Origin: Thalia democratica
Taxonomy: Eukaryota
Direction of reading: 5' to 3'
DNA length: 64,000 nucleotides
Assembly: GCA_965202585.1 (NCBI GenBank)
Contig: OZ241834.1
Coordinates: 682,001-746,000, forward strand
Shown here: positions 17,183-43,094 of the stretch, piece after piece
How positions within the stretch are numbered: the first letter of the stretch is position 1
Layout of the letters: the number at the start of each line of letters is the position of its first letter
Notes under the pieces: generated by a model
Told to the model about the DNA's origin: nothing
Database searches by the model: none
Seen by the model: the letters and a program-made list of their open reading frames with translations, nothing else
Made by a program: the position numbers and the translations under genes

Positions 17183-19225
17183 ATAAAGAAGAGTTATGAT
17201 GTGGTTAAATTATGCATTATAATGGTTGAAATAGTTTTTAATTATTAAAAAAAAATAAGTAGTGTAGCAGTTTATGAAATTTACAAAAGTTAATAATATT
17301 ATTTTAAAAACAGTTATTTATGTTAAATATTATTTAAAAATATGTTGTTTTATTTATATTTCTAAGTTAGGACATAAAAATATTCTATTTTAGGAGTGTA
17401 AGCTAGATTGAAGATAAATTAGTTTTATAATGCAAATTTTTTTGCGGGTTGATAATCAACCATCTTTTTATAAAGAAGAATTATGAAGTCTGTAGGTAGA
17501 ATAATCTAAAGATGAGACAATTTATATAATTATAATATTTATTTGAAAATAATTTGTCAAGCAGCTCATGCAACAAGCTTGACTTAATGAATAATTATAT
17601 TTAAAATATAGTTAAATGATATTATTTAAATAATCTTGTACCTAAAATTATCCTGAAATTATTCTTTACAATTTCCTCTGTAAATATTACAACTGTACTA
17701 CAGCTAAATTAAAATAAAATGTCCTTCAAAGCGTTATGTAAATTTTGTACTTTACATAAATATTTAGTTAGCAGACTAAAATTGCTATCTAAACTTTGTT
17801 TTTAAAGACTTAGTATTTCTATAAATTTTCAAGAAAAAAATTTACAAACCGCTAAACTGAAACATACTAGCTTAACCGTAGTATAGTAATAGCAAATTAT
17901 AGGTCAGCGGGGCGAAAGTATCAAAAAAAAAAAAAACTTGCCAACATTTGATACCAATGCATATATTTTCTCCATGTACCTAGAGTTTTAAAAGTATTAC
18001 AAATTGTTTGTTACCACCTAAATAGTTTGTCTAAATGTTCTGAAGTGGTAAATTAAATTAAACCTTTTTTTAATTATTCCCTTAACTTCATGGATTACTT
18101 AAACAAAGATCTTCAAAAATACTTTTTAGTCCCATGGTCATGTGTACAGCTCCAAGTTTTCTTTAAACTAAGTAAGTGGTTTATTGAACAAAATCAAAAA
18201 ATCGCTCAAAAATTTGTGGTTCAAGGACCTAGATACGCAAAACGAGGATACTCGGTCATCGAGTTGCAGAATTGTAGCGGACACGAAATATTTTTTGCAG
18301 ACTTTATGTAGGCAGGATAATATGGAAACAGGACAATTTTTTATATATAAATAATTATTGAAAATAGTTTATCAAGCGACTTTTTTAATAAGCGGGTTGT
18401 CTAAAATATAATTAAAAGCATATTTAAGAATAAACTATTCAAAATATAAATTAAAGCGTTGACTAATACAGATCATTGCGATACAAGTTCACTGGAGTAT
18501 ATAATAATAATAAACTTAGACTGTATTCTTTATGTAGAAAGAAAGAATAGTGGTATATTAGTTGTTATTATTTAGGAGGACTTTTCAACATTCGTTTAAG
18601 TAATACTTTTTTACTCTATTAGCATCAACTTCTTACCAGACTTCAATCATTTAAAATCCAATTAAGTGAAAACAAACAAAGACTTTGACATCAACCTACT
18701 TATTAATTTTTGATATCAACCTTCAAAATATTTAGTTGTTTACAAAAAATATATAATGCTTTAGTCCGGTTATAATATAATTATTTGTCATCATTAATAA
18801 TGTCTTCATTTAAGTTTAATGGTTGCAATTCTATGAAGTATGTTGAATTAAGATCTTTTTATCATTTATTGCATTGCCAAGGCATAATCGATACAATTAC
18901 AACCGTACAATATCAAGACTATTTCAATAAAACATTAAAAGTTTAAATGCATTGACTAGCAATGAAATTATAAGCCCCAAGCACATTAAGAATAGACAGG
19001 CCTAGTAAATTTTAACGAACACATTGTAAAGGATTTTATTAAGCGAATATTTTATAAAGGAAAAGCGCTGCTAATAAAATCGAACTATGGATTAAATCAA
19101 GTCTTACAAGTTTAATCAATTGTTGATAAAAAAACAGCAAACTTAAATTTTTAACTTTAATCGAAAATTTTTAACGTTTTTTGCAAGACACTAAATTATT
19201 TTAAAGTTTGTTCCAAGTTTTAACT

Positions 19226-22200
19226 CAGCGGTCGGCAGGCAGTTGGTGGTCGCGGGCCAAATTTCAAGTTTCCAAAGTCTTTGCGGGCCGCAGTTTTAGA
19301 TTTGGTGACATTTGAATAATCTTATGGTTTTAGTTTTAGTCACACTAGAGAAAAGTTTTACTTTTATTCACCTTATTATTTAAAATGTCTTTTAGCTGTA
19401 CATGTAATACCTACTCAAATTAATATTCACTAGATTATGATTTACATTGACTAATATACTTTAATAAATATGTACTAATATTGTTAACAAAATATGTACT
19501 TTCATAAGCACTAAATAAGGTAAACCTAATACTTTTTTAATTTTACTTACAACCTAACTCTCTATAAAAACCTAACTTAAAAGACAATTTATGGGTTACT
19601 TTTATACATTTGTTATGTCATCAACTCTTTTTCATATTTCTAGGAATATTTGTTTCTAAAAAAGTTTTTGCGAGTTAAGTAATTTACACTTATTAAGAAA
19701 TTTAGTAATTAGTTAACATAATAAAATTAATACCTGTTTGTGTTCCAGAACGCTAAAACAAATGATTTAACACAATTAATTCTCAAACACTTTAATAAAA
19801 TATTTCATTAGTTATTACACTTTTACATTGTTGCCACTTAAAAAGCAAAAATGTCTGAGATGTATCAAACCAGCTTAAATTTATTAAAATTTGAATAAGG
19901 TAATAAATAGTTGTTGATCAAGCTTAAATACTTAGTTAAAATATCATCATTATCAAAATATACACAAAGTGTAAGAAAACAAGAAAAAAATGCAATTAGT
20001 AAACTACACAACAGTCATAAAAACTATTCTGAGAATTGGAAGATTTTTTTGAAGTGTTTGAAATAAAAGCTTCACACACACCTGAGTTTTCAAGCTTTTA
20101 AAATAGCCTGTTTGTGTAGCAACCCAGTTAGTATAAAGTTCACTACATAAAGAAATAATAACAAAGGTTATTAACAGTAAATAAGTTATATGCCAAAAAA
20201 ATATAAGTCAGCTGGAATGGACAATTAAGTTTTTTAAACAAGTTTAACAAAAGTGTAAAATTTTATTGAGTCATTAGCAAAGTAGAAATTTTCTTTTTAT
20301 TATGCATGATAGCAAATCTTTATTTGCAATTAGATTATTATTGCATTTAAAAATATTAATTGTAAAATATAAGACGCGCTACATGAATAAAAAAAGCGTT
20401 AGTTAGGAGTCATTGCAAGAAACAATAAAAAAATTACCAAAGTCATTTCCGACAAAGCACATCATTATCTTCAGTAACTACAGAATAATCAGAAAAAATT
20501 GTTAAGGCAAGTAATAAAGTATCAAAATTTATTACCTAAAATGAGATATCGTTTATAATTGAAAACTTTTATAAAGAATTGATGTTCGCGGTAATGAAAA
20601 ACTTTGTTTATTTCTTCGATGACAACATGAAGTCGTGTTTTAGAAAAGGTTATAAAGTCTCATAAATCAAATTAGGACTTTAATCAAACTGTTAAGATGA
20701 GAGAAAAACTATGATAGAAAAACTATTGCTCTTCTGAGAATTTTTATTAGAGATGTTTTTACTAACTTTGACATTTTAGTAGAATTTCTTGGTTTAGTTC
20801 CAACGCGAATCACAACAATCGGTGAAATTTTTCAAGTAAAAGTGCAATGTACCAATACGGAGTTTTTGGAAGTCCAATTCCTTCTTTTATTTTTAGTATT
20901 AAGTTTAATTAAAGTTTTGAAAAATGTCTTAAAACATTTATCAATATTAAAAAATACTGTTAAGCTACTATAATATATTTTTTAATAAAAAAACATTTAT
21001 TTGGTAATTTTTTTGAGTCAAATCGAAATTTCATTACTTTAAATGTAAAAATTGTTTTAAATTCTAGGTATTTTCAAAAATTCTCAAATTCAAGTTTTTT
21101 TCTAGAATTTTAAACCGTAATTTAAAAAATCAAAACTTTTCCGGGATTCAACTTGTTTGGCAAAACTGATTGTTCATTCTTTAATGTACACAATAATATA
21201 AATGATGTTTTGAACTATATCAGCTGCAAGACTTAAAATTTAACATATATTAAATCTCAAACTAACACTGTGGATTAAGCAAAACATACATCATAAGTTT
21301 AATTTGCCACTCTTTCAAGCAAAAATGCCAGCCTGAGTCAACAAAAACATTCCTGATATTTTTGTATACAAAAAGCAATTCTAGCCAAAAACTTAAAAAA
21401 TGGCTTAGTTGGCCTGAGATTTGAAGTGTTCAAACAGTGATAGTCTGAGTGTGTGGCAATGTTTAATTGTTTGTTTGCTTGAATTTGAACTATTTTGATT
21501 AACAATGTACAAACATTATAAATTTACCATCCCTATATCTAGTTTATATTAAATAGTATATATATCCAAAAAACAGCAATTGTGTGTATTGATATGCAAG
21601 GCATAAAAATTAACTTAGCTTGAAAAAAACAATGTTTGAAAAATGGAATGCATACCTAACAAAAACTATATTAACTTATGTAATATATATTGTTTTAAAT
21701 GTGTCTGTACAAATTTAGATATGACACGTAAAATAAAAATGTTAGAAAAGTATGCATAAACCAAACTTAAACTGACTAAAGTATTAAATAAAAAGTGGTT
21801 TAAAATATAAGCATTTTTTTAAGTTGGTGTGCATAGAAAACTTATAAGAAATTAAAATGTGTCAAAACAAAAATCAAATGAACCTTATTTCTTGTTACTA
21901 TGTTATTTTAAATGTTTTCACACTAAAATATAACACTTACAAATTAAAAATTTATAAAAGAAACTGAGGTATAAAAAATATTAAAAAAGAATATCTAAGC
22001 TAAAAAGAAATGACACTTTAATTAATTACTGTGCATTACTTTTGAACAAAATGGAAAATATTTGCATTTAGTTTATTTAATAAATAGGTATAATATAACT
22101 AATTTATTAAATTCAAGCACTCTTGACACTCTTTTTTCCAAAAATTACTTACTGTTGTAAAAAAGAAGTAATTATGTATCTGAGAAACATATCCTGTTAG

Positions 22201-22489
22201 AACGCTAATCTGTCTATTTCACTTTTTTAAACTAAAGCAGTAATTTCTTGAAATTATTTTGAAATGTCATAGAGAGATTTAAAATCAAACTAATCAAATT
22301 AAGTCGAATTACCGAAAGAATTGAAATAGAAATATAATTTTGCTCAGCGGGCCACATTTACATGCTCGCGGGCCACAAGATTTTCTTTCGAGGGCCGCAT
22401 TCCATTCAAAAAAATGACACGCTCGCGGGCCGCAGATTTACCCTTCGCGGGCCGCAATTGGCCCGCGGGCCGCAGTTTGCCGACCCCTG
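19226..22489 (+). mobile_element. hAT transposon (Charlie/SPIN-like), 3.26 kb, decayed; present in the left arm only
   Basis: TIR CAGCGGTCGGCA / TGCCGACCCCTG. 8-bp TSD TTTTAACT (19218-19225, 22490-22497). Subterminal GCGGGCC repeats. The right arm near 38765 shows the empty site. Confidence 0.93.
20492..20839 (+). pseudogene. Degenerate hAT transposase fragments (GTF2IRD2/SPIN-like)
   Basis: Translations EKIVKASNKVSKFIT*NEISFIIENFYKELMFAVMKNF and FIRDVFTNFDILVEFLGLVPTRITTIGEIFQV. These resemble the ASY.VS..IAK and FIRGV...EELL.LVP...TTTGEDIF motifs of this family. Confidence 0.7.
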
Positions 22490-22727
22490 TTTTAACTGAA
22501 CGATAAATCAAAGAATTATGCCAAACATCATTATTGAAATGATATATAAACATAATGTTCTTGTTTTTACACTTAAGAATATAAATTATTTTATAAGATT
22601 CAGAAATGGATGGTAAATTAGTTGTAGTTTAACCTTAACCTAGTTTAAAAAAAGTAATGAGGTTAAGTTTTCTATGTTATTAAAATTTAAATTATGTGTT
22701 TGTAGTCTATTAAGGTAAAGCGTATAA

Positions 22728-23058
22728 CAGAGGTCGGTAAACTGCGGACTTCAAAGTCAAAATCTGCCGCTCCTAGTTAGCATGAAACATACATTTTTAA
22801 AACATAAGAAATTAAATATTTTGTAATAAAAACTTACAGTTAGGCTCTTATTTCAATAAATACTCTTTATTAGTCCTCTAATATTGCTTAAATTATTATA
22901 TTTTTGATCTTAAATTATGTATTTTTCTGATTACTAGAACCTTTTTTTAATAAATGATAAATGCGGCCCTCAAAGGTCTTTTTCCAAGTAATGCGGCCCG
23001 TGAGATATTCTTTTTTAAGAAAGTTGGCCGGCGAGTTACATAAGGCTGCCGACCCCTG
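22728..23058. mobile_element. hAT MITE (331 bp), left-arm copy
   Basis: TIR CAGAGGTCGGTA / TGCCGACCCCTG. 8-bp TSD GCGTATAA (22720-22727, 23059-23066). Confidence 0.9.
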
Positions 23059-26000
23059 GCGTATAAGAAACATTGCAGCGGTTGAAGATTATTCTGGTAC
23101 ATAAATTTTAAAAATTTCTATATGATTGATATCTTTTAAAGTATGGAGACCAGATTGGTGTGTTGTATTCCAACTTAGGACGAGTTTATAAGAAGTACAA
23201 CTCTTTTAAGATGTTATATCCGTGTATTTAAAACTTTAATACATATAGCCGATATTAATCGGCAAAGCTTATTAGTATGGTGGTTCTATTTTAAATTTTC
23301 AGCAAAAAAATTCAAAAATCTTTAAACACTTATTTTAAAGATAAGTTTTTTTTTCAAGTCAAAAGTAGAGATAAAGGTATTTTTTGAAAACATGACATCT
23401 ACTACGCCACTAGAAGTTTAAGCTAAATTTTCTTCTTTTAGCCAAAGGTAAACTTTATCTAAGAATTTTTTAAGGCTATATTAGTATCGTTAAAACTTTT
23501 TTGTGTCGTTAGTAGAGATTAGTATAGCTGCTTACATCGACTTCAGAAGCTACATCAATCATACAATTAACATACCTTTCTTGAGGCACTCCATTTGACC
23601 GGTAAAGGTTTAAATTGTGTTATTAATTACTACTTCTTGGGTTATAATATGAAGAAACCCTTTAAACTAACTAGACTAATACAAATTTTGCACTGAAAAA
23701 ATGTTTTTGTTAATTTGAAATGAATACAGAGTCGAAATCTTTTGGATTTCTGTATAAATTACTTCAGTACACTTATTAGAGAGAAAACCAAATTGTTTAG
23801 GTAAAATAAGGTTTAAAAAATTACCACGTGACTTAAAAAACTTACATGTTCAAAGATAATGCAAAAACTACTCATCAAAAAGATTGGTTCGAAATTTCAA
23901 AGGTTGTATTTGCTACCTTTTTGTTACCTTAGTGATCTTACTTCAGTGATATTTGCCATTGTTTTGGCGCAAAGTATATAACCAATAAACAATTTAAAAT
24001 TACTTGAAAGAATAAATTGTGCGCTTAATAAATATGAAAGAATATTTTATGAAGAAATATTTTCGGTGTCCTTATAATTTCATCTTTCAAAAAGTTAAAA
24101 GAATTAATTTTTTCATCATTGCTTTTAAATAAACTTTGCATTTATAGACAGTTTTTCTAAAAATATTTCAAATTTTCGTCTTTATCATCTTCATCAAATA
24201 CTTTTTGAGAGGATTTGTTAATAAAAGAGTTTTTATCAAATTCAGATACTATTGGAAAATTGTTTCTATCAAACAATAAATTAAAAGATATATAATAGAT
24301 AAAATGCTTACTTACCTTATAATCCTAAGATAGTTTATGCTCTCAACTTTTTATTTAGTATTACAGTAAGATTTAGTTGTTTAATATTAAAAAATTCATG
24401 TCATGTTTTTCACAGAATGAATGTTTTAAATTAATGCAAAATAAAGTTGTAACAGTTTTCCTGTTTTGTTTCCATAAATATCTAAACTGTTTTTTAGTGC
24501 AAATATTACACCTATAAATTAAGGAAACTTTAAGGCAAGATTAAACATTTAAACTGATATAATTTAATTATCAATCGTTGATTTAGCTTAAAGCGTTATA
24601 GCATTTAGACTTTTTTCTCTAACTTGTAACCTATTTATATATAAACGAACAGTTTAAACTTAAACAGTTTTAAATTCATAAAAATAACGTTTAAAATAGA
24701 TTTGAAAAAGTTTACTTAAATGTCTTACTTTACTAAATCTGTAAACTTTATTAAAAAACACCGACGAAAGTCGAACAGAGCTGAAGGACTTTCGTGTGCC
24801 GTGAGACAACATCAAGTTTTACAAAAGGGTTGATCATGCCAATAAGATCGTCTAGATTTCGGTAGAATGAGACCCCGATTTTGTTTTTATTTAAAGTTCT
24901 AACTACCGAAAGCTTGTGGTTTGAACGTCCAAATGTTATGACCAAAATTTTATATTAAAAATTTTAATATGAAGTTACCCGAAAAAAAATATTTAGTAGC
25001 ACTTTAATTATATGTTGTAAAGAAGTTATAAAAGTGATGTATCTTAATTTTTCTTAATCTAGATTTTATTTAAAAAAATACCAGCTTAAATTATGCACTT
25101 AAAAAAAAATATTTTGAAAAGCTACTATATCATTTAGATAATTTGCTTGACAGTTTTAGAAATGTTTATCCAAGATACAATTTAATATTTAAAAGTTTTA
25201 GTTAAAGATCATTTATAATTCATGTAAAGTAATTACAGATTATTTTTTACTTTATTAATACATTGCATTTTTTTTTCCTATAACCAAGTTTTTTTGAAGT
25301 TAATCTTGTAAAAGTATATTGATCAAGTTAATACTTAAAAAAAGTATTTTGAGGTATTAGACCAGTTTTAAGAATAAAGTCTTTCTCATTTTAAAAGTGT
25401 CAAAATAATGATGTTGGTCATTAGGACGTTTATAATGACCAGTTGAACTTGTGCTGGAAATTCTTCTCAATATGTTTATATTACGTACTTTCCCGTATAA
25501 AAGCTATCATGAGTCGTTTTTTTCAGGCTCACTAGTTTCAATACAAATAAACTAAAATCAATATAATGATAGTTTAATTCAATTGTAAGTTAAAGTTGCT
25601 GCTATCTAGTATTTTATTGTTTAAATCAATTAGTTGAACGTTTCAATAAATTTTCCTTTATTTTATGTACTTCATAAAGTAATAATTATTTTAGCAAAAA
25701 CAATGAAACTACTTCTTGGTTATGAGTTATACAATATCAAACAAACTAAAATGTGCCTAGTACTTTTAAAATTAATTATTTAGTAAACTTATACAGGCAT
25801 GAACTTTTAATTGCAATAAAGCTGTTTAGGAACTTTTTTCCCTGACGAGTTAACGTTGAATCCAAAAGTATTTCATACTTTGTTTGACAATCTCGAACTT
25901 TTCTGATGGTTATTAAGTTTTTTTTTCGTACAGTATCTACTATTTATAAATTTACTTCTTAGAACACTAGTTTAAATATCTCTTAATATAGAGATTTATT

Positions 26001-27876
26001 TATTTTGCTGAAAATAGAACGTAATTAAGAATAAGCAGTTTGTTTGAAACCAGCATTTCTAAAATCTATTGAATATTCTTAAATTAGACTTATGTGTCGT
26101 ACTTAACTTCAATATTTTAAATATCTTTTACTTTTTTAAGACAGTAAGAAAACTGCTGTATTACCTTTGATTTATAACTAGTTTCAAAGTTATTTTTACT
26201 ACATTTTTGCAGTTTATAATTTTTACACAAGATTTAAAGACGTAAGCATCTTAAAGAACCACCTTTGTAGTAAAAATAAATCTTTTACAGATTATTTTCT
26301 TCAGTGCGTATTAAGGTGATTAAGAAATACAATGAATTACTTGATATAAATAAAACTATTAATTAACAATAAAGCTGTATAGATCTAAGCCAAATAGTAA
26401 AGATGTTAGTAATTAACATTGAGTTTTTTTTTGGATATAATTTACTTTTGTTTAAAGCTACTCCCAGAATAAATCAGAACCTAAAGTAAGCTAACTTTCA
26501 ATGAATGTGAACAAGGTTTGGATGCAGTATTTTCTATTTACTTATTAACAAAGAGTCATATTTAGGTTATAAATTGAAATAATTCACTTCAGTTTATAAT
26601 TAAACTTGATTCTAATGTAACCTAACTGTTAATGTTTATATGGACGTGATAAACAAAGTTTTGATGCAACATTGACTGATGAAACACACTTAAAGTTGTA
26701 ATTTTGTTTCAAACGTGTAGTGTAGCTATGTTAAAATAAATAAATTAAATTGAAATAAAAAACTTTCAAAATCTTGTTTTATAAAACTAGTTTGAAAACA
26801 TGTTACTTAAATATTTCAGTTTTTATACTAGTTGAAATTTTCGGTAACAAAACTTCCTTACTAAAGAACTTTTGATTAAAATGTAACATTAACAAAACAA
26901 CTTTATAAAAAATTATCATAAGTTGTTACTGACATCTTTCTAAGTTTTTATTAACTACCATATATTAAGTGTTTTTATAGAAGTTTATTGAAGGACTAAA
27001 AGCTTATCACTTTTAGAAGTTATCTTAGAAATTATAGCGTTAGACTAAACAAATTCTAAAGTTGCTTCACAATCAAACATCAATAAAATTAAAAAGACTA
27101 CTAAACAATACAAACTTTCTTTAAATAATTTTGTATATTTACAACTATCTTTTCAATGAAGTCATCCTCGGCCAGTACGACTGTACTGTGAGAAACACGT
27201 TTTAATTTAAAAGTTGAAAACTGTTGTTATTTATACTAAAACTAAGTTATACTAAGTTGATTTTAAATAAAAAAAGTTTATAAAGTCATGTTTGACATAT
27301 TGAAGCTGTTCAAGGTCAAATTTTAAATGTAATACTTTTATAAGTAATTTTACTCGATGAAAACATAAAGTTTCGACATATTCAAATTTATGTTGTGTAT
27401 ACTTACTTAAGTCGATTTTTTTTTCTTTTTATGTTTTGTAATAAAAAATAATTGTAAATATTTTTATCGATAATGCTTTCTTTCAATAAACTTGCTAACA
27501 TCGAAATAAAACGTTTCATAATTTAATCTTATAACATATCATAAATACAAATATAAGCTACATTAAGTACTATATATATGCTTACATTTTTGTTATAAAA
27601 ACTTAATATATAAAATACTTAAACTACAAGTTTTCAATATACCAAATGTTTATTATTGAACATAAAAGTATGTACAAATGAAATGAATATGTTATTTTCG
27701 AAAACATGTTTTGTTTTTAGTTACACAATAATGTATAGTAGGGTCGTAAAGTCAACTGTAGTTAACTTATATAAACTTTAAATTTTTAAAAAATTAACTA
27801 AAGACAAGAGTATAAAACTTAAAAATTTATTTAAGTTGGCTTGTTCAACTCGAAGTTTATATATCCGACAACAATT

Positions 27877-28204
27877 TTAGTAAAACATTAAGGTTGTAAA
27901 GTGTTCCACAATATCAAAAGTAAATTTTCTTTTTAATTTCGCAAAACCATGGAAATCAGCTTGCCAATTTAATCTTGTGCAAGAAACGTCGTTCAGCGCT
28001 TTATTATTTGTTCCGCTTACTATTTGTTTCGGCATGTAATGAACGCATTCCCCGTCAAAACTCGGTTGGTTACCATGGAAATCGTACAAAAGGGAGTTAC
28101 CCCAATCAACAGTTTCCCCGTTCAGATACTTGTAAACTCTCTGGTTGCCACGGATACCAACCCACATGTTTTTTCCTGACGATTCCACCAACTTCCTGAT
28201 CTCT
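27877..28204 (-). CDS. Collectin-like gene, coding exon 4: C-terminal part of the C-type lectin domain, with a probable frameshift near its end
   Basis: Acceptor ctttcaatcag|A, phase 2. Translates EIRKLVESSGKNMWVGIRG...WGNSLLYDFHGNQPSFDGECVHY...LNDVSCTRLNWQADFHGF. The expected terminal CEIKKKIYF* is in another frame (27943-27914). Confidence 0.85.
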
Positions 28205-29140
28205 CTGATTGAAAGTTTTTTTTTAATATAGCAACCACTGCTAAATGTTTATTAAGTTATATAAGTTTATACAAAGTTAAAAATTTAATTTCTAAATTTT
28301 ATATCAAACAACGTTAACTCTAATAAAAGTTAAATGGTTTATGTTTTATTTTAATTTCTAATTTGTTTACTGATTTTTATGCTTTCATTCTTTTTTTTTT
28401 CTGTTAAGCCAACTTTTATAATTTTAGAACATTTGATTAACGGTAAAAAGTTTTCGTTGTAGTTAAAATATGTAAGTCTACCTTCTTAAATAAGCTTAAA
28501 TCGCACAATATTTTAATTCATTTTTAAATTTTGTTAAAAAAATCAGTAAAGTTTCGATTTTAGTAGAGTAATTTAATGAACAAACTAATATAAACTTTAA
28601 ACATAGATTAGTTTAGTACTAATCTTAAGCTGGAATACTTGTTGGATTATATTGTCTTAATGAAATTTTAAACATTATTATATTCTATTAATTGAAGAAT
28701 TCTAAACATTATTATATTCTATTAATTGAAGAACTACAAGTTTGTTAGTTACTTCAACAAAAATCCTTTATGTAGTATATTTCATGATAAACTTTAATAT
28801 TTTTTATATTCGTTATTGAAAGTTTGTTTGATATGAAAGTTTTAACTTTTTAATTCATTGGAACAATTTGTTTTTTTTTCTAACAGCTAAAACATAATCT
28901 TTTTTTTTTAAACAATGATTTATAATTTTGAATACTTGTTAAATACCATAGTTTTGTGAAGTTTTACACAATTAAGTTACAAAAAAGTTTTAAGTTATAA
29001 ACAGTTTTCATCGTCACGCAAAGTTTCACACTATAAGTAACAATAATTTAAAAACTTTTTATTGAATAAAAAACTGTCAATAATCATAATTTTGCCAAAA
29101 ATATTATTTTATTGCATTTATAATTATCAAAATAACCAAC

Positions 29141-29267
29141 GAATGATAATAAGCTCCTTCAACACCAAAGTTCAAATAAATTAGATCACCTCCCATTGAT
29201 CTACATTGGTCTCTACAGGCATCAAAAGTTCCTCTGTTAGCTGTTATCTTGAACTCATACCCAAATA
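29141..29267 (-). CDS. Collectin-like gene, coding exon 3: N-terminal part of the C-type lectin domain
   Basis: Acceptor aacag|TA and donor TC|gttggt; 127 nt, phase 1 to 2. Translates (L)FGYEFKITANRGTFDACRDQCRSMGGDLIYLNFGVEGAYYH(S). Confidence 0.85.
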
Positions 29268-29444
29268 CTGTTCAATGTTCAACATTTAAAAATTCAATTA
29301 TAAAGTATTCAAAGCTGTTGGAAAATTTTTTTGTTAATTAAAACAAAAGGAAAGCTCAAACCCTCAAATTGAAACTTATTTATGTGTTTTATAATTTTAC
29401 AACTAACATAATAAAGAACATGGTTATTATTATATACCACTAAC

Positions 29445-29585
29445 GTGTTTTATTCAATGTGTTTACAATATTTCCAACAGTTTGTTCTAACACTAAAACT
29501 TTTTCTTTTAAAAGTTTATTTTCAACAGTGAGCTCATCAATTTGGTTTGTTACGTCACAATCAACTCCAGGCTCTCCTTTGTCAC
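29445..29585 (-). CDS. Collectin-like gene, coding exon 2: end of the collagen segment plus coiled-coil neck
   Basis: Acceptor ctaacttcag|GT and donor C|gttagt; 141 nt, phase 1 to 1. Translates (G)DKGEPGVDCDVTNQIDELTVENKLLKEKVLVLEQTVGNIVNTLNKT. Confidence 0.88.
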
Positions 29586-30128
29586 CTGAAGTTAGTATAG
29601 AGAAATATTAAGTTTTTAAATATTGATAAAATTAGATAGAATAAATTTTCAATAATCTTTAAAGTTGTTGTTTTTTATTAAACCTTCTTACTTTTTTTTC
29701 TTAGTTACTGTTACAAAAGTATTAAATAATGTCGAGCTACCAAACCTTTTTGTAATTTTTATTAGATTCAATTCGATGTAATTTAAATAATTTAAGTTTT
29801 GAAATCAATTTTTGTATACTAATATTATTTATTGATTTTATATTAGAAAAAAGTTTAATGTAAATTTTACTTATAAATTTTACGAAAATAGTTGTTAGAG
29901 TTTTTTCGAAAATATCATTTAAATTTAAAAGTACAATATAGGCTAAGCCTAAAGATAAACAAGTAGCACAAAAAAGGTTTAAAACTTTTTTTTAAATTAC
30001 GTAACAAAAAACGTAAATATAAAACTAAATGATTTGACTTTAAAAACCTATGTTGAGCTGAAAATAAAAATTTTAAATCTTAATTGTTAAACTCTAATTA
30101 AATTTACTGTTTAATACAAACTAATCAC

Positions 30129-30300
30129 CTTTAGGGCCCTGTTTACCCCTTTTCAAAGTTGGACCACTAATTGGCTGATTTTGACCATTACAAACCAAGT
30201 TTGCCACCTGTGTAAGAATGTCTTCATTTTGGTAACTATTTTCATCAGTTGATTGAACTCGACCGGTTGTTAAAATAAATATTACAAGCAATTCCTTCAT
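30129..30300 (-). CDS. Collectin-like gene, coding exon 1: signal peptide, N-terminal segment and start of collagen
   Basis: Start context acaATG; translates MKELLVIFILTTGRVQSTDENSYQNEDILTQVANLVCNGQNQPISGPTLKRGKQGPK; donor G|gtgatt; 172 nt. An acceptor tttag at 30313-30314 implies an upstream UTR exon. The four exons sum to 768 nt = 256 codons in one frame. Confidence 0.87.
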
Positions 30301-32750
30301 TGTTGAATAAACCTAAAGTAACTTTATTTCTAGTTATGAAAGGAAAACTTTTAAAGGTTTTTAACACTAAGTTTTTAAAAATTTTAGTGATAATTTATAA
30401 AACTAAAATTGTATCGTATTTTGTTTTTTGCTTTTTATCAAAAGAAGTTTTGTACATCTACAAAAAGAAGTTAAAAAAAAAGCTCTCTTCCAAATGCATT
30501 TATGCATAAAAAAAAGCCTTAATTTTATTTATTATTAAAAACTTTCAAATTAATATATGTACATAACAATGTTTAATGTCAATTTGCGAGTAGCATCTGT
30601 TTAAAATCAAATTTTAAAAACTTTGCTTTTAAAACAAACAACATACTTCAACACACTTAAAGTTAAGTTTTCTAACTTCAGTCAAAACTTTTTTTTTTAA
30701 TTTTAAAACTAATGAAAAATACTTAACATTTTTTTTATTTTTATTAGCTGTTAGAAATTTTAAAACAAAGCATTTTAATAATTTGTTTTTGTAAGTTTAT
30801 AACGTACCACATAGCCACTATATTTTTGAAATTTTGTCTTTGTGGAGCTGTTTACATTCTATAAGGAGCAGATTGCCGTCAGGCAAATAAAGTACTTGCA
30901 AAAACAACAGTTTTGATGGTTTTATTTGTTTGAATTTCTAGGATATAATTCTTAATAAATTAGGTATGTAACATATCAAATGTTTAATTTATCAAAAGTA
31001 TTAAGGAATATTTTATTTTTGATTGCTGTACAAATTAAGAACTATATTTTTCGTTTTAAAACACAGCTAATAAAAAACTTGGCAGTCAACTGATATGAAA
31101 AACTTCTTAAAAAAATTGCATACTTTTATAAAATGTACTTGAATTGATGACAAATTTACATTTTATAAAAATTACTAATATATTTTTGAGTGTCTTAAAA
31201 AAGTAAAAGATATTTAAAATATTGAAGTTAAGTACGACACATAAGTCTAGTTTAAGAATATTCAATAGATTTTAGAAATAATGGTTTCAAACAAACTGCT
31301 TATTCTTAATTACGTTCTATTTTCAGCAAAATAAATAAATCTCTATATTAAGAGATATTTAAACTAGTGTTCTAAGAAGTAAATTTATAAATAGTAGATA
31401 CTGTACGAAAAAAAAAACTTAATAACCATCAGAAAAGTTCGAGATTGTCAAACAAAGTATGAAATACTTCTGGATTCAACGTTAACTCGTCAGGGAAAAA
31501 AGTTCCTAAACAGCTTTATTGCAATTAAAAGTTCATGCCTGTATAATTTTATTAAATAATTAATTTTAAAAGTACTAGGCACATTTTAGTTTGTTTGTTA
31601 TTGTATAACTCATAACCAAGAAGTAGTTTCATTGTTTTTGCTAAAATAATTATTACTTTATGAAGTACATAAAATAAAGGAAAATTTATTGAAACGTTCA
31701 ACTAATTGATTTAAACAATAAAATACTAGACAGCAGCAACTTTAACTTACAATTGATTTGAAAAAGTTTACTTAAATGTCTTACTTTACTAAATCTGTAA
31801 ACTTTATTAAAAAACACCGACGAAAGTCGAACAGTATTTGATATCATTATATTGATTTTAGTTTATTTGAATTGAAACTAGTGAGCCTGAAAAAAACGAC
31901 TCATGATAGCTTTTATACGGGAAAGTACGTAATATAAACATATTGAGAAGAATTTCCAGCACAAGTTCAACTGGTCATTATAAACGTCCTTATGACCAAC
32001 ATCATTCTTTTGACACTTTTAAAATGAGAAAGACTTTATTCTTAAAACTGGTCTAATACCTCAAAATACTTTTTTTAAGTATTAACTTGATCAATATACT
32101 TTTACAACATTAACATCAAAAAAACTTGGTTATAGGAAAAAATAATGCAATGTATTAATAAAGTAAAAAATAATCTGTAATTACTTTACATGAATTATAA
32201 ATGATCTTTAACTAAAACTTTTAAATATTAAATTATATCTTGGATAAACATTTCTAAAACTGTCAAGCAAATTATCTAAATGATACAGTAGCTTTTCAAA
32301 ATACTTTTTTTTAAGTGCATAATTTAAGCTGGTATTTTTTAAAATAAAATCTAGATTAAGAAAAATTAAGATACATCACTTTTATAACTTCTTTACAACA
32401 TATACTTAAAGTGCTACTAAATTTTTTTTTTCTGGTAACTTCATATCAAAATTTTTAATATAAAGTTTTGGTCATAACATTTGGACGTTCAAACCACAAG
32501 CTTTCGGTTGTGGTTTGAATTTAAATAAAAACAAAATCGGGGTCTCATTCTACCGAAAGCTTGTGGTCTGACAATCTACTTGGCATTATCAACCCTTTTG
32601 TTAAACTTGATGTTGTCTCACGGCACACGAAAGTCCTTCAGCTCTGTTCGACTTTCGTCGGTGTTTTTTAATAAAGTTTACAGATTTAGTAAAGTAAGAC
32701 ATTTAAGTAAACTTTTTCAAATCTATTTTAAACGTTATTTTTATTAACAG

Positions 32751-35425
32751 TGTAATGAAACTAACATTTCATTTTAGTATTTTAAAGCTTGTGAATAAAT
32801 ATGGAATTTTTTGTAAAAATAAAAGCTTTTCCAAAACATTTTTCATTATTTTCAAAACAAGCTTTTCCAAAACAATTTTTATAACTCTTAAAACAATTTT
32901 CTAAAACAATAAACAATATTGTTTACTTAAAGGAGTTACATTTGTTTTAGTGCTTATAAAACGGAATTTTACTTGCAATTACTTGCAGTAGCAGTTTCGG
33001 CAGAGCATTCGGCAAGTGTGCTTTAAGTTAAAATGCATTTTAAACACGTTAGATTTAAGAACTAATATTTTCTTGTGTGTTTAACTTTAGTTCTCATATA
33101 GAGTGATGTAATTGTATCTTTGTGTTGTTTAGTTTATGTAAATAAAATATAAGTGTTGTTTTGATTGTTGTATTAATCTACTTTACTAATCCCTATTACC
33201 CCCGTAAACATCTGTGTAACGAGACATTGGAAACCATGTGTGGCCTGTATTTTAGGAATCTTCTGATATTTAGGAATTAGGTGCCTTATCAATTAAAAAA
33301 CGCAGCGAAAAAAAAAACTTTAGTTTATTACTAAACAACTTTTTAACGAGTTTAAAATTTTGACAGTATAATTTGCGATAATAATTTACTTTGCGACATT
33401 TCACTATGATAATAGTAAGAAAAATTGTGTGAATAACATTCTACTTTTAAACAGCAAGTCTACAATTATAATACAAGTGTGTGGTAGTGGTTTATTTAGT
33501 TTTGTTAAAAGTGAAGCTTGATGTCAAGGATTTTTTGCTGGAAGTACTATATAATTTTTGCGGTTATTTCTATGTATAGTTTTATATATGTTTTTTTAGT
33601 GCTTAGGTGCACATTTTATGTGCTAACGAGCGTAATATTTCTTCTTCTTAGTGCACAATATAAGTTGCAACTAACATAAGTCGCATGGGTGCGCAGTTTT
33701 TCGATCCTAAAAAGCTTAATCTTTTTAGCTAAGGGTATAATATAAGTTGCAATTAACATAAGTCGCATAGGGGCGCAGTATTTTGATTATAAAAAGCACA
33801 GTCTTTTTACTCTAGTGCACAATGTTCTTTGAAGATGTTACAATTTACATAAGTCGTCAGGGGACGCAGTACTTTAGTGCAAAATTGCATTTTATAAGTT
33901 GCCAAGAGAGCGCAGTTATTATATTTTTCTAAGCATAGAAATGTAAAGTAAGAACCGCAATAAAATTTAGAATTACAACAGCAGAATAGTTGTTCTTAAT
34001 AACGTCTGAGTTTTAGCTAATAAAACAAATTTGTCTATTTGTTTACTACTACTAGTTTATTGTTTTGATCTGCTGATTGATTGTACTAAAGTATAGATTG
34101 TATTTGTTTTAAATCAGAATGTTTCTGAAGTTTAAAAGTATATTTGAATGAGTTTTCATCTTTCTTAGTCGTAAAAAGATAAGTTTCTTGCTACATTTTA
34201 TTACTCGTTTCAAGTTCAAGTATAAAGTTGTGTTAAAATTTTTCCTTTGAAAGAAATCAAAAATAAACTCCCCTTAAATTTAGCAGTCGTTGTTTGTTAA
34301 ATAAATTGTTGCGTTTATATCTTTTTAACGTTGTTTGAAGCAAATTGTTGTTTGATAACCACAACTTTTAAGCACACCTAACACCTTGCTGCTGCATGAA
34401 ACTTTAAAACTTTTTTTGTTTATAAGTACGACAATAAACAAAAGATTGAATGAAGATTTTGTGTTTGTTCTATTACGTCACAATCAAGTTCCTGCTGTCA
34501 TTGTTTCCAAAGCCAATCGATGTGGTGTTTTGCTGATTCAACAAACCAGCTAGAAGACAGAAAGTCAAATGTTCCCTAAAAGAAACAAGACGTTGTCAAT
34601 GATCCAATTGATGGTTCATAAGCCTCTATTAACAACCTGAGGATAACAACCTGAGGATAACAGCCCGACGACAAGCCCGAGGACAACAAGCCCAAGGACA
34701 AGAACTTCGAGGACAACAAGCCAGAAGCCAACTAAATGACTATCATTGTTATCTTGTTGTGTTTTATCAAAGTTTTTGTAAATTATGTAATTTTTAAGAT
34801 AATAAGAAATACAATTTCTTTTTCTTACTTTTTTTAAACCGGACTTTTGATAATGTCTAAAAAGTTTAAAGTTAAGTAGGATTTTAAGGATTTAAATTAT
34901 TTAAAACCAGGCTTTAAACGTTAAAATTGAAAATTAAAAAAGAAACAATGTAATGAAACTAACATTTCATTTTAGTATTTTAAAGCTTGTGAATAAATAT
35001 GGAATTTTTTGTAAAAATAAAAGCTTTTCCAAAACATTTTTCATTATTTTCAAAACAAGCTTTTCCAAAACAATTTTTATAACTCTTAAAACAATTTTCT
35101 AAAACAATAAACAATATTGTTTACTTAAAGGAGTTACATTTGTTTTAGTGCTTATAAAACGGAATTTTACTTGCAATTACTTGCAGTAGCAGTTTCGGCA
35201 GAGCATTCGGCAAGTGTGCTTAAAGTTAAGATGCATTTTAAACAAGTTAGATTTAAGAACTAATATTTTCATGTATGTTTAACTTTAGTTCTCGTATAGA
35301 GTGATGTAATTGTAATTGTGTTGTTTAGTTTATGTAAATAAAATATAAGTGTTGTTTTGATTGTTGTACTAATCTACTTTACTAATCCCTATTACCCCCC
35401 TTAATAACATCTTTGTAACGAGACA
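32751..35425 (+). mobile_element. Non-autonomous LTR retroelement (2.7 kb, two ~476-bp LTRs, non-coding interior); right arm only
   Basis: Direct repeats 32751-33226 and 34949-35425, each TGTAATG...GAGACA (TG...CA). 4-bp TSD ACAG (32747-32750, 35426-35429). TTGG follows the 5' LTR and an A/G-rich tract precedes the 3' LTR. No gag or pol motifs recognised. Confidence 0.88.
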
Positions 35426-35520
35426 ACAGTTAAAACTGTTTATATTTAAACTGTTCGTTTATGAACAGTATAATATAAAACATGACATGAATTTTTTAAT
35501 TCTAAACAATTAAATTTTAC

Positions 35521-36975
35521 AACATTTAGAGAAGAATAATTTTAAATAACATTTTTATCAACGTTTTTAAATAATTTAGAGAAGAATAATTTTATAAAGC
35601 TAATGAAAATAGCAACGAGTGATGTACAGTTTAATTTCAATAATACAATTTACAGTCAGATAGACGGCGTAGCCATGGGGTCACCTTTGGGTCCTACTCT
35701 AGCGAATATTTTTATCGGATATTTAGAATCCAAAATTGCTGACGACTTATCTTCACAGGTTGTCTACATAAGATACGTCGACGATTGTTTGGTTATATCC
35801 AAAACAGAAAGTTAAAACGAAGCTGTTTTTCAAAAATTAAACTCTTTACATGAAAAGATTTCTTTTACTAGAGAAGTAGAAGAGAACAACCAGCTGCCAT
35901 TTCTGGATATATTAATAATAAAAGATAAAACAAGCTTCTTAACGAATGTCTATAGAAAAACAACTTTCACTGGGCAATACTTACACTACCAATCGTTTTG
36001 TAGTAAGAAACGAAAAGTAAACCTAATCAAAAACTGTACCATAGAGCATACAGAATCTGTTCGAAAGAATTACTTCATTCAGAGGTTAAGAGAATAAAAA
36101 AAATTTTAATAAAAAATGGTTACCCACCAGATTTGATTAAGAAGGTGATAAAATCACACCACAATAACATAAATCAACCTAGGCTATTTGGACCGGAGAA
36201 GTTCCCAGCAATATTAAAACTACCTTATATTGGAGAAAAATCACGAGTATTTGAGAGCAAACTAAAAGACTTAACAAAAACATCTTACAATCAAGTGCTT
36301 CCAAGAGTTATATTTCTTTCAAAATCTTTATTAAAAGTGCAGTTGAAGGACCCGATACCAGACCAAGACAAAAGTTGTGTAGTATACAAGTTTAATTACT
36401 CTTGCGAAAAGAGCTATATCGGTCAGACCTCTAGGCACTTAAAAACCAGGATAAAAGAACATCTACCTGCTTGTGTATTAAAATTCATCGAACATAAACC
36501 TGAAATTAAGACAATAGCAACAAAAAACGCAGCAAAAAGATCTTCAGTTGCAGAACATCTAACAAATAATAGAGATTGTGCTAGGAAATATGACATATCC
36601 AGATTTGGAATAATCAATCATTGCAATAGTGTGTTTGATCTCGTGAAGTTGGAGGCTATCTCTATATTTTTGGAGAAACCAGAACTGTCTAAACAGAAGG
36701 AATTTGATTAAAAAGTGTTACTTATTATTTATTTAGTTAAATTATCTATTTTTTATCCGTTAGTAGTATTTGAGTTTAATTATTTATTACTTTACACTGA
36801 TTATTTATTGTGCTTAACACTTTGTTAGTTTTAACTTTTTGTGTTTTTGTTTAAAAACTTATTCACAGTTTTAAATTTGTTCTACTATTAAGTTCTGACG
36901 AAAAGTAGTGTAATACGTATAAACTATCACAGAAAAAACTTGAGAGAGTGTTTTATTTATTTGTTTTTGCATTAA
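35521..36975 (+). mobile_element. Penelope-like retroelement, 5'-truncated; right arm only
   Basis: Interrupts sequence that is contiguous in the left arm (~24364). Carries Penelope RT and GIY-YIG remnants and a T-rich 3' region. Possible degenerate TSD ATTAAATTTT(T)A. Confidence 0.9.
35576..36711 (+). pseudogene. Penelope RT + GIY-YIG endonuclease ORF remnant (in-frame stop at 35813, frameshifts near 36030-36130)
   Basis: YSQIDGVAMGSPLGPTLANIF, YIRYVDDCL, NNQLPFLDI, VYRKTTFTGQYL and VVYKFNYSCEKSYIGQTSRHLKTRIKEH are diagnostic Penelope RT and GIY-YIG motifs. Confidence 0.95.
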
Positions 36976-38238
36976 ATTAAATTTTTATGTAATACTAAAT
37001 ATAAAGTTGAGAGCATAAACTATCTTAAGATAATAAGGTAAGTAGGAACCTTCTTTTTATTTATTATTTGATAGAAACAACTTTCCAATAGTATCTGAAT
37101 TTGATAAAGCTTTTTTTTTTAACAAGTTTTAACAAGTCCTCTCAAAAAATATTTGATGAAGATGATAAAGACAAAAATTTGAAATATATTTATAAAAACT
37201 GTCTATAAATGCAAAATTTATTTATAAGCATTGATGAAAAAATTCATTCTCTTAATTTTTTGAAAGATGAAATAATAAGGACACCGAAAATGTTCTATAT
37301 ATTTGTTAAGCGCACTATTTATTCTTTCAAGTAATTTTAAATTGTTCTTTGGCTATATACTTTGCGCCAAAACAATGGAAATATCAAACATTATACAAAA
37401 AAGGTAGCAAGTACAACCTTTGAAATTTCGAACTAATCTTTTTGATGAGTAGGTAAGTTTTTTAAGTCACGTGGTAATTTTTTAAACCTTATTTTACCTA
37501 AACAATTTGGTTTTCTTTCTAATAAGTGTACTGAAGTAATTTATACAGAAATCCAAAAATGTTCGACTCTGTCTTTCATTTCAAATTAACAAAAACATTT
37601 TTTGAGTGCAAAATTTATATTAGTCTAGTTAGTTTAAAGGGTTTCTTCATATTATAACCCAAAAAGTAGTAATTAATAACACAATTTAAACCTTTACCGG
37701 TCAAATGGAGTGCCTCAAGAAAGGTATTTAATTGTATGATTGATGTAGCTTCTGAAGTCGATGTAAGCAGCTATACTAATCTCTACTAACGACACAAAAA
37801 AGTTTTAACGATACTAATATAGCCTTAAAAAATTCTTAGATAAAGTTTACCTTTGGCTAAAAGAAGAAAATTTAGCTTAAACTTCTAGTGGCGTAGTAGA
37901 TGTCATGTTTTCAAAAAATACCTTTATCTCTACTTTTGACTTAAAAATAAACTTATCTTTAAAATAAGTGTTTAAAGATTTTTGAATTTTTTTGCTGAAA
38001 ATTTAAAATAGAACCACCATACTAATTAGCTTTACCGATTCATATCGGCTATATGTTTTAAAGTTTTAAATACACGGATATAACATCTTAAAAAAGTTGT
38101 ACTTCTTATAAACTCATCATAAGTTGGAATACAACACACCAGTCTGGTCTCCATACTTTAAAAGATATTATTTATATAGAAATGTTTAAAATTTATATAC
38201 CAGAATAATCTTCAACCGCTGCAATGTTTCTTATACGC

Positions 38239-38533
38239 CAGGGGTCGGCAGCCTTATGTAACTCGCCGGCCAACTTTCTTAAAAAAAAAATTTCTAACGG
38301 GCCGCATTTATTAAAAAAAGGTTCTAGTAATCAGGAAAAATACATTATTTAAGATCAAAAATATAACAATTTAAGCAATATTAGAGGACTAATAAAAAGT
38401 ATTTATTGAAGTAAGAGCCTTACTGTAAGTTTTTATTACAAAATATTTAATTTTTATGTTTTAAAAATGTATGTTTCAGGTTAACTAGGAGCCGCAGATT
38501 TTGACTTTGAAGTCCGCAGTTTACCGACCTCTG
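38239..38533. mobile_element. hAT MITE, right-arm mirror copy of 22728-23058
   Basis: TIR CAGGGGTCGGCA / TACCGACCTCTG. TSD TTATACGC (38231-38238, 38534-38541). Confidence 0.9.
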
Positions 38534-41149
38534 TTATACGCTTTACCTTGATAGACTACAAACACATAATTTAAATTTTAAGAACATAGAAAACTTAACC
38601 TCATTACTTTTTTTAAACTAGGTTAAGGTTAAACTACAATTAATTTACTATCCATTTCTGAATCTTATAAAATAATTTATATTCTTAAGTGTAAAAACAA
38701 GAACATTATATTTATATATCATTTCAATAATGATGTTCGGCATAATTCTTTGTTTTATCGTTCAGTTAAAAATTGGAACAAACTTTAAAATAATTTAGTG
38801 TCTTGCAAAAAAGTTAAACATTTTCGATTAAAGTTAAAAACTTAGGTTTGCTGTTCTTTTATCAACAATTGATTTAATCCATAGTTCGATTATATTAGCA
38901 GCGCTTTTCCTCTATGATTAATAAAACCCTTTACAATGTGTTCGTTAAGATTTACTAGGCCTGTCTATTCTTAATGTGCTTGGGGCTTATAATTTCATTG
39001 CTAGTCAATGCATTTAATCTTTTAATGTTTTATTGAAATATTTTGTATATCTTGATATTGTACGTTTGTAATTGTATCGATTATGCCTTGGCAATGCAAT
39101 AAATGATAATAAGATCTTAATTCAACATATTTCATAGAATTGCAACTTAAATACATACATTATTAATGATGACAAATAACTATATTATAACCGGACTAAA
39201 GCACTATATATTTTTTTGTAAACAATTAAATATTTTGAAGGTTGATATCAAAAATTAATAAGTAGGTTGATGCCAAAGTCTTTGTTTGTTTTCACTTAAT
39301 TGGATTTTAAATGATTGAAGTCTGGTAAGAAGTTGATGCTAATAGAGGAAAAAGTAATACTTTAACGAATGATGAAAAGTCCCCCATAAGGGTCTTCTTT
39401 ACAACGTTGTTTCAACTATTTTAGTACAACCCTAATATCAATGCGACACACTTGGTAATTTTTACTCAACTGGCACTTATGCTAATAATCTTAATCAATC
39501 AAATTGACAACAAACGTTTTAGATTTCGTTAACTTTCGAATATTCTAAATGCTTAAATATATTGCTATGAACCTAAAATTCTTAAACTACACGCGTACTG
39601 ATCAGTATGTACTTAAAGTAAAGTGTAAAACACTAACAACGAATTAATGTACTCCTAAATAATAACAACTAATATACCATTATTTTTCTTTGTACATAAA
39701 GAATACTGTTTAAATTTATTATTATTATATATTCCAGTTAACTTGTATCGCAATGATCTGTATTAGTTTACGCTTTAATTTATATTTTGAATAGTTTATT
39801 CTTAAATATGCTTTTAATTATATTTTAGACAACCCGCTTACTAAAAAAGTCGCTTGATAAACTATTTTCAATAATTATTTATATATATATAATCAGTATG
39901 TATTAGTGCTTATTGTATTAATCAGTATGTAAGCACTTAAAGCTTAAAATTGTAATTAATTTAGTTTTACTTTTATTGAAACATTATGAACCCAAATTAA
40001 ATTTTAAATAGTAAATATGAAGATATTGGTAGTATAAAATGAAGATATAAAGTGATTTACCAAAAATAATTTTGCACATATTAATTAATAAATTTTCAAT
40101 CTTTTAACTTCAATTTTTAATTAGAATAATACATTACATAGTATATAGTAATAATACCAATAAATTAAATAGAATTTAACATTATATTTTAACAAATTTA
40201 TGGTTTCAGAAAACTTTAAATTGCTTAAACAAAATGCTCTTTGCAGCACATAAAACAAATAAATTATCCCAAATAATATTTACATTCATCTGTTCCAACA
40301 GGTAATTGAAACTGAACTTTACAGCAGGTGTGCCAACCTTTTGCTTATATGTGAAAAGAATGAAAATTGTTGAACTAAGTAACAATCATATGAAATTTAT
40401 GTCTTAATAAAATTACTTTGTAATATAAGAAGTAGTTTGTAGTTTAAACTTTTATTAAAGTTATTAATTGCTGAATATTATAGAAATTATGTCAATAAAG
40501 CATGATTATCTTACTAAGGGCTTAAAAGACAAATCATTAGTTATACAAGTGTTACCAGATTGTTAAATAATAAAGTAATAAATAATAAGATTGTCTCCTT
40601 GGTTATTTAATCAACAAACTTTTATCTAAAAAAGTATGTATGTATGAAATAAACAAATTTAAAGATACATCAATGGTATATTTATAATAATCAAAAATAG
40701 ACGACTTTTTATAGAAAAACACGCTAAACTATTTTTAAAATATTACTAAGCTTTACCACCATAAGTCTATACAATTTAACAAACGTCAAAAAAGTTTATT
40801 TGAACTTGTGTAAAAAGATCTTTGAAACTTAGGATACAAAGAACTATTAACATTGAAAGTAATAATTAAACAAATTGCTGTAGATCATTAAAAAAGGAGA
40901 GATTTTTCAGTAAACGTTTCCATTTTTTCTTAATTTTAAACTATCATTAATAATTTATGATATTAAAGTAAACTTATTTTGTAGTTACTTTAAAAATATA
41001 AACTATTTTTTAAATTAAAAAATCACGTAACTTAATTTTAACATCATAAAATGTGACTAAAGTATTTAGAAATATTGTGTGTGATTTATAAATGATCTCC
41101 ATCGAGATAGTTTTCAAAAATGATTCGTCAAAGTTTAAACATCATTTCA

Positions 41150-41935: not shown

Positions 41936-41994
41936 CTTAATCCGGCTAGTTAACAGAATCAAACCGAAAACTATCTAAACTGGAGCATGTACAA

Positions 41995-42095: not shown

Positions 42096-42195
42096 CTTTA
42101 ATTTAGTAATTAATGGTTGGCTCTCGTCTTTTATTTCTGGATAACTTTTTTCTAATATATTAGATTTTTTCAAGTCTTTATTTGTTCGTTACAAC

Positions 42196-43093: not shown

Positions 43094-43094
43094 A

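Follow-up and report, generated by a model that had tools for sequence, protein, structure and literature searches.

The 64,000-nucleotide stretch of Thalia democratica DNA considered here (the window, C10:682001-746000) contains a 21.5-kb inverted repeat that holds a collectin-like lectin gene in its loop. This structure is probably an old palindromic (inverted) segmental duplication, formed where low-copy repeats cluster in satellite DNA, close to the starts of two chromosome-scale contigs, C10 and C9. The lectin gene in the loop is a passenger, a young and decaying member of a trio in satellite-rich DNA of which two out of three are damaged, and not a specially captured cargo. The window was compared with itself, with the whole assembly (802 Mb, AT-rich), including an unplaced contig, C470, read over 35219-42053 (~6.8 kb), and with the short Logan k-mer contigs of three runs (X1, X2 and X3) and of metagenomes. 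The inverted repeat is composed of the following parts:

18336-26143, plus strand: left arm (repeat listing, self-BLAST and base-level comparison)
26144-31190, 5,047 bp: spacer, or loop (self-BLAST and base-level comparison)
31191-39893, minus strand: right arm (repeat listing and self-BLAST)

The inverted repeat is real. The repeat listing holds 14 inverted pairs within 18336-39893, which self-BLAST merges into four collinear inverted blocks (18336-18636/39893-39605, 18575-19230/39385-38759, 22490-24378/38771-36975 and 24675-26151/32747-31183). Base-level comparison places the inner arm ends at 26143 and 31191, and the spacer limits that result are exactly those given by a first, sequence-only reading of this DNA, which had also recognised the 21.5-kb structure. 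Of the flanking arms with a ~4.5-kb core described in that reading, the common core stands, at ~4.3 kb, but the arms are broken by insertions of 3,264 bp on the left only and of 4.2 kb on the right only. Arm identity amounts to 87-98% in ungapped segments and 89-92% in gapped blocks. Measured as Kimura two-parameter (K2P) distance, divergence between the arms is 0.046 in the outer part, 0.052 in the mid part, 0.033 in the inner part and 0.018 in the innermost 571 bp, i.e., it falls from ~5% outside to 1.8% beside the loop. Tandem Repeats Finder (TRF) detected no tandem subrepeats or arrays in the arms. The arms are also mosaics of older dispersed repeats (22740-23060, 24755-24890), among them a ~320-bp unit with dozens of copies genome-wide at 76-83% and a ~140-bp unit often found as close inverted pairs, in the manner of miniature inverted-repeat transposable elements (MITEs).

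The two insertions are private to one arm each:

19226-22489, plus strand: hAT-like non-autonomous DNA transposon, 3,264 bp, in the left arm; the empty site is kept in the right arm
32748-36974, plus strand: Penelope-like retroelement, 4.2 kb, in the right arm

Members of the hAT superfamily are recognised by an 8-bp target-site duplication (TSD), short terminal inverted repeats (TIRs) starting with CAG or TAG and, in autonomous members, a hAT transposase. The left-arm insertion is flanked by an 8-bp TSD (TTTTAACT, at 19218-19225 and 22490-22497) and bounded by a 12-bp TIR (CAGSGGTCGGCA) matched at 11 of 12 positions; the length of the TSD and the CAG start of the TIR suggest that it is hAT-like. 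This copy has no transposase (no search was made for an autonomous partner), and at least 40 dispersed near-full-length copies, 85-93% identical, occur on many chromosomes. Penelope-like elements carry a reverse transcriptase (RT) followed by a GIY-YIG endonuclease, together with direct repeats that form pseudo long terminal repeats (pseudo-LTRs). The same layout is seen in the right-arm insertion, in which an RT open reading frame (ORF) at 35603-35815 (Pfam RVT_1, E 6e-9) lies upstream of a GIY-YIG-like ORF at 36133-36711 (E 0.0048, a weak match under the Pfam cut-off) and is accompanied by direct repeats at 32666-33226 and 34845-35425 (560 bp, 90%). Its ORFs are fragmented, so that this copy is degenerate. 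The element stands in place of 297 bp that are kept at 24379-24675 in the left arm and also in the other copies of the family. It is a high-copy repeat, since over its edge (32600-33200) contig depth exceeds that of the loop by a factor of ~100-600. Both insertions are later than the duplication. A palindrome artefact generated by chimeric reads is excluded because the arms have diverged by 2-5% and carry private transposable element (TE) insertions.

The spacer, at first described as unique, is not: it has copies at C9:716686-721880 (~94-97%) and at C470:36715-40571 (95%). The segment C9:722460-720755 aligns unbroken across 25573-27292, and C9 remains collinear with the window from the arm through the spacer to 31186. 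This collinearity means that 26143/26144 is not a breakpoint, and the left arm with the spacer is shown by these alignments to be the older, continuous arrangement. Past 31186, C9 and C470 enter a 2.47-kb unique sequence (C9:714217-716685, matched by C470:35219-36714 at 97%), which is absent from the window and from 112 kb upstream, and the C9-type junction is also found in a contig of X4, a marine-metagenome run. In the window, the sequence ending in TTACTAATATATTTT is followed by TGAG and then by the right arm, and the 36-mer across this junction occurs a single time in the assembly:

31187-31190: palindrome-specific junction; C9/C470 homology ends at 31186, the 4-nt filler TGAG follows, and the right arm runs from 31191

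By this comparison, the palindrome as assembled has one novel junction, marked by the filler. The spacer also contains a degenerate, inverted monomer of the 259-bp satellite (~26916-27284, ~64-74% identity), and it is by this monomer, at 27272, that the C470 spacer copy departs from the window.

The arm belongs to a low-copy duplication family. Searches of the assembly with each arm block found at least six further copies (89-96%), confined to satellite-rich DNA near the starts of C10 and C9; when the spacer copies are included, the whole family is confined to two satellite-rich regions and the unplaced contig. The arm copies and the flanks of the inverted repeat are:

C10:577562-582808: copy U1, matching the window from 25594 down to 17350, without both insertions, inverted relative to the left arm
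C10:644535-649768: copy U2, matching the window from 25594 down to 17350, without both insertions, inverted relative to the left arm
C9:684837-690079: copy C9a, following the right arm to 40550 and crossing the right outer end
C9:721881-734321: copy C9b, an arm in two pieces, to 17330, with 259-bp satellite between the pieces
C10:3511225-3516661: copy F, a second palindrome, matching 40903 through 39893 on one side and 18336 to 17296 on the other
17171-18335: left flank, between the 259-bp satellite and the left arm, common to L-type copies
39894-44270: right flank, reaching the 271-bp satellite, common to R-type copies

R-type copies (the right arm, C9a and one arm of F) lack ~3 kb that L-type copies (the left arm, U1, U2, C9b and the other arm of F) have kept. 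U1 and U2 extend 1 kb beyond the left outer end into the left flank, whose homologues at C10:581585-582808, C10:648544-649768, C9:733082-734321 and C10:3515438-3516661 align through 18336 to ~17300-17350 at 88-94%. On the opposite side, the full 4,377-bp right flank aligns at 91% to C10:3507836-3512222, beside F, and parts of it align to C9:736142-740580, C9:689428-691505 and C10:658819-660043. Because copies cross the outer ends of the inverted repeat into homologous flanks, these ends are not element termini; they are instead the points at which the R-type and the L-type differ. The inner ends differ as well: U1, U2 and C9a stop at 25594 and share a different, 460-bp continuation, and the spacer-adjacent segment 25594-26143 is common to both arms of the window structure and C9b. 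Inner-end and outer-end types are found among the copies in all four combinations, which implies that copies have exchanged parts. In C9b, a 6.7-kb array of the 259-bp satellite (C9:723188-729898) splits the arm between the window-equivalents 25128 and 19225, and the satellite apparently expanded inside a former arm copy. The family map does not extend to C9:690-706 kb.

The sequence-only reading had offered two explanations, the first being a giant foldback or Pack-type element that had captured an immune gene and might mobilise it; in such a DNA transposon, the lectin gene would be enclosed by long terminal inverted repeats. Foldback and Pack-type transposons (Pack-MULEs and others) do place long inverted repeats around host-gene sequence, and the occurrence of a repeat-only version (F) next to a version with repeat and cargo (the window) superficially recalls Foldback families. 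However, each defining test that was run (TSD, unrelated flanks, subrepeats or transposase) went against such an element. As that reading had itself reported for an outer TSD, the sequence adjoining 18336 and 39893 contains no direct repeat and no terminal signature; there are no conserved termini and no subrepeated TIRs, and the ORF list and Pfam revealed no transposase-like ORF of at least 50 aa in 17200-44200, arms and loop included (no search for an autonomous partner was made in the rest of the genome). The flanks were duplicated together with the arms and are homologous between copies for 1 to 4.4 kb, single-arm copies cross the supposed termini, and the lectin spacer borders one arm on C9 and none within the part of C470 that was read. 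A transposon of this kind is thus extremely improbable. The second explanation, an inverted segmental duplication, has held up, since arm copies elsewhere carry homologous flanks. The genome-wide arm search, set beforehand as a check, did find the arms elsewhere, but as segmental duplicates with common flanks and not as transposed copies. A Polinton/Maverick-like or other large DNA element was considered for its size and rejected, as no matching ORFs exist: the coding ORFs in 17200-44200 are those of the lectin exons, the Penelope-like element and RT-like fragments in the right flank. Scanning 17000-44400 for Rfam families and tRNA genes gave no match.

The second palindrome, F, located at C10:3.51 Mb, is informative on the history of the first. 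Its inverted repeat (3512233-3513577 versus 3515668-3514310, 96.3%) has 1.36-kb arms and a 732-bp spacer that is composed of arm sequence and holds no lectin. F has the same outer ends as the window structure and the same pairing of one R-type with one L-type flank, and it lacks window 22703-37851, lectin included. In the simplest reading of these alignments, the whole palindrome would have been duplicated together with its flanks as a segment, and one copy, F, would then have lost its centre. Palindromes of this kind are well known from primate sex chromosomes, where the arms are >99.9% identical, arm-to-arm gene conversion operates, and genes are duplicated in the arms and preserved. The window structure resembles such palindromic low-copy repeats in its inverted arms around a unique spacer and in its location in a repeat-rich region prone to inversion, conversion and centre deletion; identity is likewise higher where the arms are uninterrupted, and F can be read as a centre deletion. 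Unlike the primate palindromes, its arms are much shorter and 95-98% identical, and its gene lies in the spacer and is decaying.

As regards the mechanism, the junction would have arisen by an inverted duplication of the fold-back or template-switch kind, with a break at 31186 and priming back at 26143; alternatively, it could have arisen by end-joining of two inverted family members. Subsequently, the outer part of the right arm may have been exchanged with, or may derive from, an R-type paralogue, and arm-to-arm gene conversion would now operate mainly on the uninterrupted 1.5-kb inner block. In reported fold-back inverted duplications, spacer length ranges from 766 to 70,466 bp, with a median of 3.4 kb, and the junctions show microhomology of 2-8 bp or short insertions (Hermetz et al. 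2014, PMC3907307). With a 5,047-bp spacer and a 4-nt junction insertion, the window structure lies within the range of that study (PMC3907307), and it shares with those rearrangements the inverted arms, a kb-scale spacer continuous with one arm, a single distal junction and the shortness of the insertion. It differs from them (PMC3907307) in being fixed in the assembly and old (2-5%) rather than de novo, in having a core of ~4.3 kb rather than megabases with no visible terminal deletion or telomere healing, and in the outer part of its right arm, which looks exchanged with a paralogue.

In maximum-likelihood (ML) trees, the two arms come out as sisters in the inner block alone (24675-25594, support 100/99). 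The mid-block tree places the right arm outside the whole set of other copies, and the outer-block tree gives it a weak grouping with U1 and U2. The informative sites over 18336-25594 are near star-like, with 58 uniting the left and right arms, 91 uniting the left arm and U1, and 56 uniting the right arm and U1. For the mid and outer blocks, where the arms are not sisters, one has to assume a chimeric origin or later exchange. Over its inner 571 bp, the right arm shows 10 differences from the left arm and 13 from the C9 copy, and it is a distinct third copy of the inner end of the arm. From these comparisons we conclude that the palindrome is likely about as old as the expansion of the family. 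Either its inner 1.5 kb have been kept more alike by gene conversion, or the right arm is a chimera whose inner part was copied and whose remainder comes from an R-type paralogue that already existed. Both options are compatible with the position of the switch in tree topology, which is that of the Penelope insertion site.

The same trees bear on a different history, in which two pre-existing, diverged family members facing opposite ways were joined, or underwent non-allelic recombination, and the inner identity is due to later gene conversion only. Such a history would account for the mid and outer blocks, where the distance between the arms is no smaller than that to distant copies, as well as for the ~3-kb outer deletion of the R-type, common to the right arm, C9:684-690 kb and one of the arms at 3.51 Mb. 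The inverted orientation of window 7557-12097 relative to C10:609260-612619 would also agree with it, as it hints at a larger inverted block that contains the left arm. Yet the right arm ends exactly at the equivalent of the spacer-adjacent segment (25594-26143), which the single U-type copies do not have, so that at least its inner 0.56-1.5 kb come from a spacer-bearing copy; the identity gradient, for its part, is compatible with both models. On balance, a history of joining followed by conversion is unlikely.

Several observations nevertheless weigh against an old inverted duplication. Both orders of events, fold-back first or joining of pre-existing copies, fit the data. The two arms of F are sisters in the tree, ~1% apart, which calls for gene conversion or an independent origin. 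The lectin exons differ by 2% between copies against ~5% for the whole spacer, and their lower divergence makes some past constraint on the gene possible. Contigs end at 31042 and at 31191, and none of those listed spans 31043-31190, so that the junction is known from the assembly only. Lastly, X1 and X3 contigs with a right-arm-type inner end (X1 record 6 and X3 record 23) continue for 659 and 636 letters off the stretch compared, 27201-33200. These two contig results, in a region full of 94-98% paralogues and satellites, could also reflect an assembly misjoin, in which a C9-like left arm and spacer were wrongly connected at 31187-31191 to a separate family copy and no single molecule carries the palindrome. 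The junction 30-mer has no match in the metagenome contigs of the Joint Genome Institute (JGI), a result that is uninformative, as this genome may be left out there. In contrast, a branch point of the contigs exactly at 31191 is what the assembled structure predicts, and the off-stretch continuations are expected if they follow the path from the left arm to the start of the loop, as the compared stretch began at 27201. Contigs confirm the spacer and right-arm-specific variants in independent or source samples; X1 and X2 contigs match the private variants of the right arm over 31191-31416 with zero differences. Moreover, the inner 571 bp of the right arm are a genuine third copy with variants of their own, this segment occurs only beside the spacer in other copies, the junction carries a specific 4-nt filler instead of a switch within shared repeat sequence, and the homologous palindrome at C10:3.51 Mb shows the same pairing of L-type and R-type flanks. 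A misjoin is therefore judged quite unlikely. DNA of the window is also found in marine metagenomes. Within the spacer, each of the three organism runs shows a contig depth at 30601-30800 that is ~4 times that of the neighbouring DNA, and numerous loose ends at 30684-30707; this is probably a short dispersed repeat in the upstream region of the lectin gene.

The lectin gene and its close copies can be summarised as follows:

27877-30300, minus strand: collectin-like lectin gene; exons 30300-30129, 29585-29445, 29267-29141 and 28204-27877; 255 codons; GT-AG
27943/27944 (plus-strand numbering), minus strand: 1-bp deletion in exon 4, one G missing in the three-way alignment
Window copy: exon 4 frameshift, QPS
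C9 copy: in-frame stop codon
C470 copy: intact, with the conserved Cys strand and QPD kept

The spacer does contain all four coding exons, as the sequence-only reading had noted, and their borders follow the GT-AG rule. The gene had moreover been called complete, which is right for the number of exons and wrong for the last of them, in which one base is deleted. Collectin-like proteins are characterised by an N-terminal signal and Cys region, collagen Gly-X-Y repeats and a coiled-coil neck, followed at the C-terminus by a C-type lectin domain in which four cysteines are conserved. The product encoded in the loop has this layout: its N-terminus is hydrophobic and signal-like, its Gly-X-Y triplets are split by a phase-1 intron, and its heptad-rich coiled-coil neck leads to a C-type lectin domain. 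But it has only five triplets and has lost the last conserved Cys strand. On exon 4 alone, Pfam Lectin_C gives E values of 1.6e-4 to 3.2e-4, which is about at the Pfam threshold. Pfam is blind to the frameshift, both versions aligning only to profile position 100 of 107, and the effect of the deletion was judged by the C-termini of paralogues. Exon 4 has 328 nt in the window and 329 nt in the C9 and C470 copies, where GGTTTGTGCGAA stands in place of GGTTT-TGCGAA, and the frameshift turns a tail that ends in DFHGLCEIKKKIYF before the stop codon into one that ends in DFHGFAKLKRKFTFDIVEHFTTLMFY. Distant paralogues on C1, C5 and C1179 all end in DFHGLCE[IM]K (3/3), which indicates that the window copy has lost the last strand and cysteine conserved in the family. 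Its QPD motif, in addition, has become QPS. The base missing at 27943 is present in an X3 contig and absent from X1 and X2 contigs, so the deletion is a real variant and no obvious assembly slip.

Among the three close copies, dN/dS (the ratio of nonsynonymous to synonymous substitution rates) is 0.7-1.6, a range based on few substitutions. Around 16 more distant paralogues occur elsewhere, with 36-53% identity over exon 4, and most are clustered on C1 and C5. The clusters lie at C1:22.09-22.25 Mb and C5:14.87-15.04 Mb, with 43-52% over the last exon; the examples examined there have EPN in place of QPD and the conserved DFHGLCE[IM]K end, and these clusters are probably the main euchromatic home of the family. 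A protein search with the intact exon 4 returned a single 54-aa ENA fragment, the length limits of that search excluding full-length relatives, and exon 4 was not found in any RNA run searched.

The inverted repeat is held in a 27-kb non-satellite island bracketed by satellite arrays:

1-3491: satellite array, 92-bp units
3489-7561 and 12096-17170: satellite arrays, 259-bp units
44275-64000: satellite array, 271-bp units

The segment 7557-12097, between the two 259-bp arrays, is an inverted copy of C10:609260-612619 at 89-91%, and the left part of the window may lie in a much larger block inverted relative to the upstream units. Upstream of the window, U1 and U2 each lie in one copy of a 15.6-kb segment that is present twice, 66,970 bp apart and at 99.5% identity (C10:570001-585611 and C10:636971-652572), and that may reach further left than the DNA examined. 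Within this segment there is a 3.6-kb tandem unit (C10:649233-655682 versus C10:652847-659278, 97.7%). The upstream DNA also holds a small palindrome with 1.18-kb arms at 99.9% and a 1.2-kb spacer (C10:601394-602569 and C10:603810-604985), and an exact 1,444-bp tandem duplication at C10:633909-636796.

In principle, the loop could plausibly be inverted by recombination between the inner blocks, which are 1.5 kb long and 97-98% identical. The 890-bp upstream region of the gene lies inside the loop and would move together with the gene, so that no regulatory switch is implied. A more far-reaching proposal is that the palindrome acts as a working inversion switch or a hotspot of recombination, and so drives birth and death in a lectin subfamily resident in heterochromatin. 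Exchange between the arms would flip its loop between individuals and repeatedly spawn centre-deleted or single-arm derivatives (C10:3.51 Mb, C9); this we regard as very improbable.

Altogether, the window structure is a further instance of an already known kind of structure, and the tempting but unsupported claim of a giant mobile element that captured an immune gene is removed. For annotation, the lectin model of the window is to be flagged as frameshifted, the intact member of the trio being on an unplaced contig. What the window offers is a case, resolved to the base, of palindromes being built, exchanged and eroded by low-copy repeats in satellite-rich DNA: it has one breakpoint marked by filler, private TEs that were inserted later and so date the arms, identity that rises toward the loop, and an apparently centre-deleted paralogue. 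If both loop orientations were seen in long reads, palindrome dynamics could be studied at this locus, a modest natural system in a marine animal.

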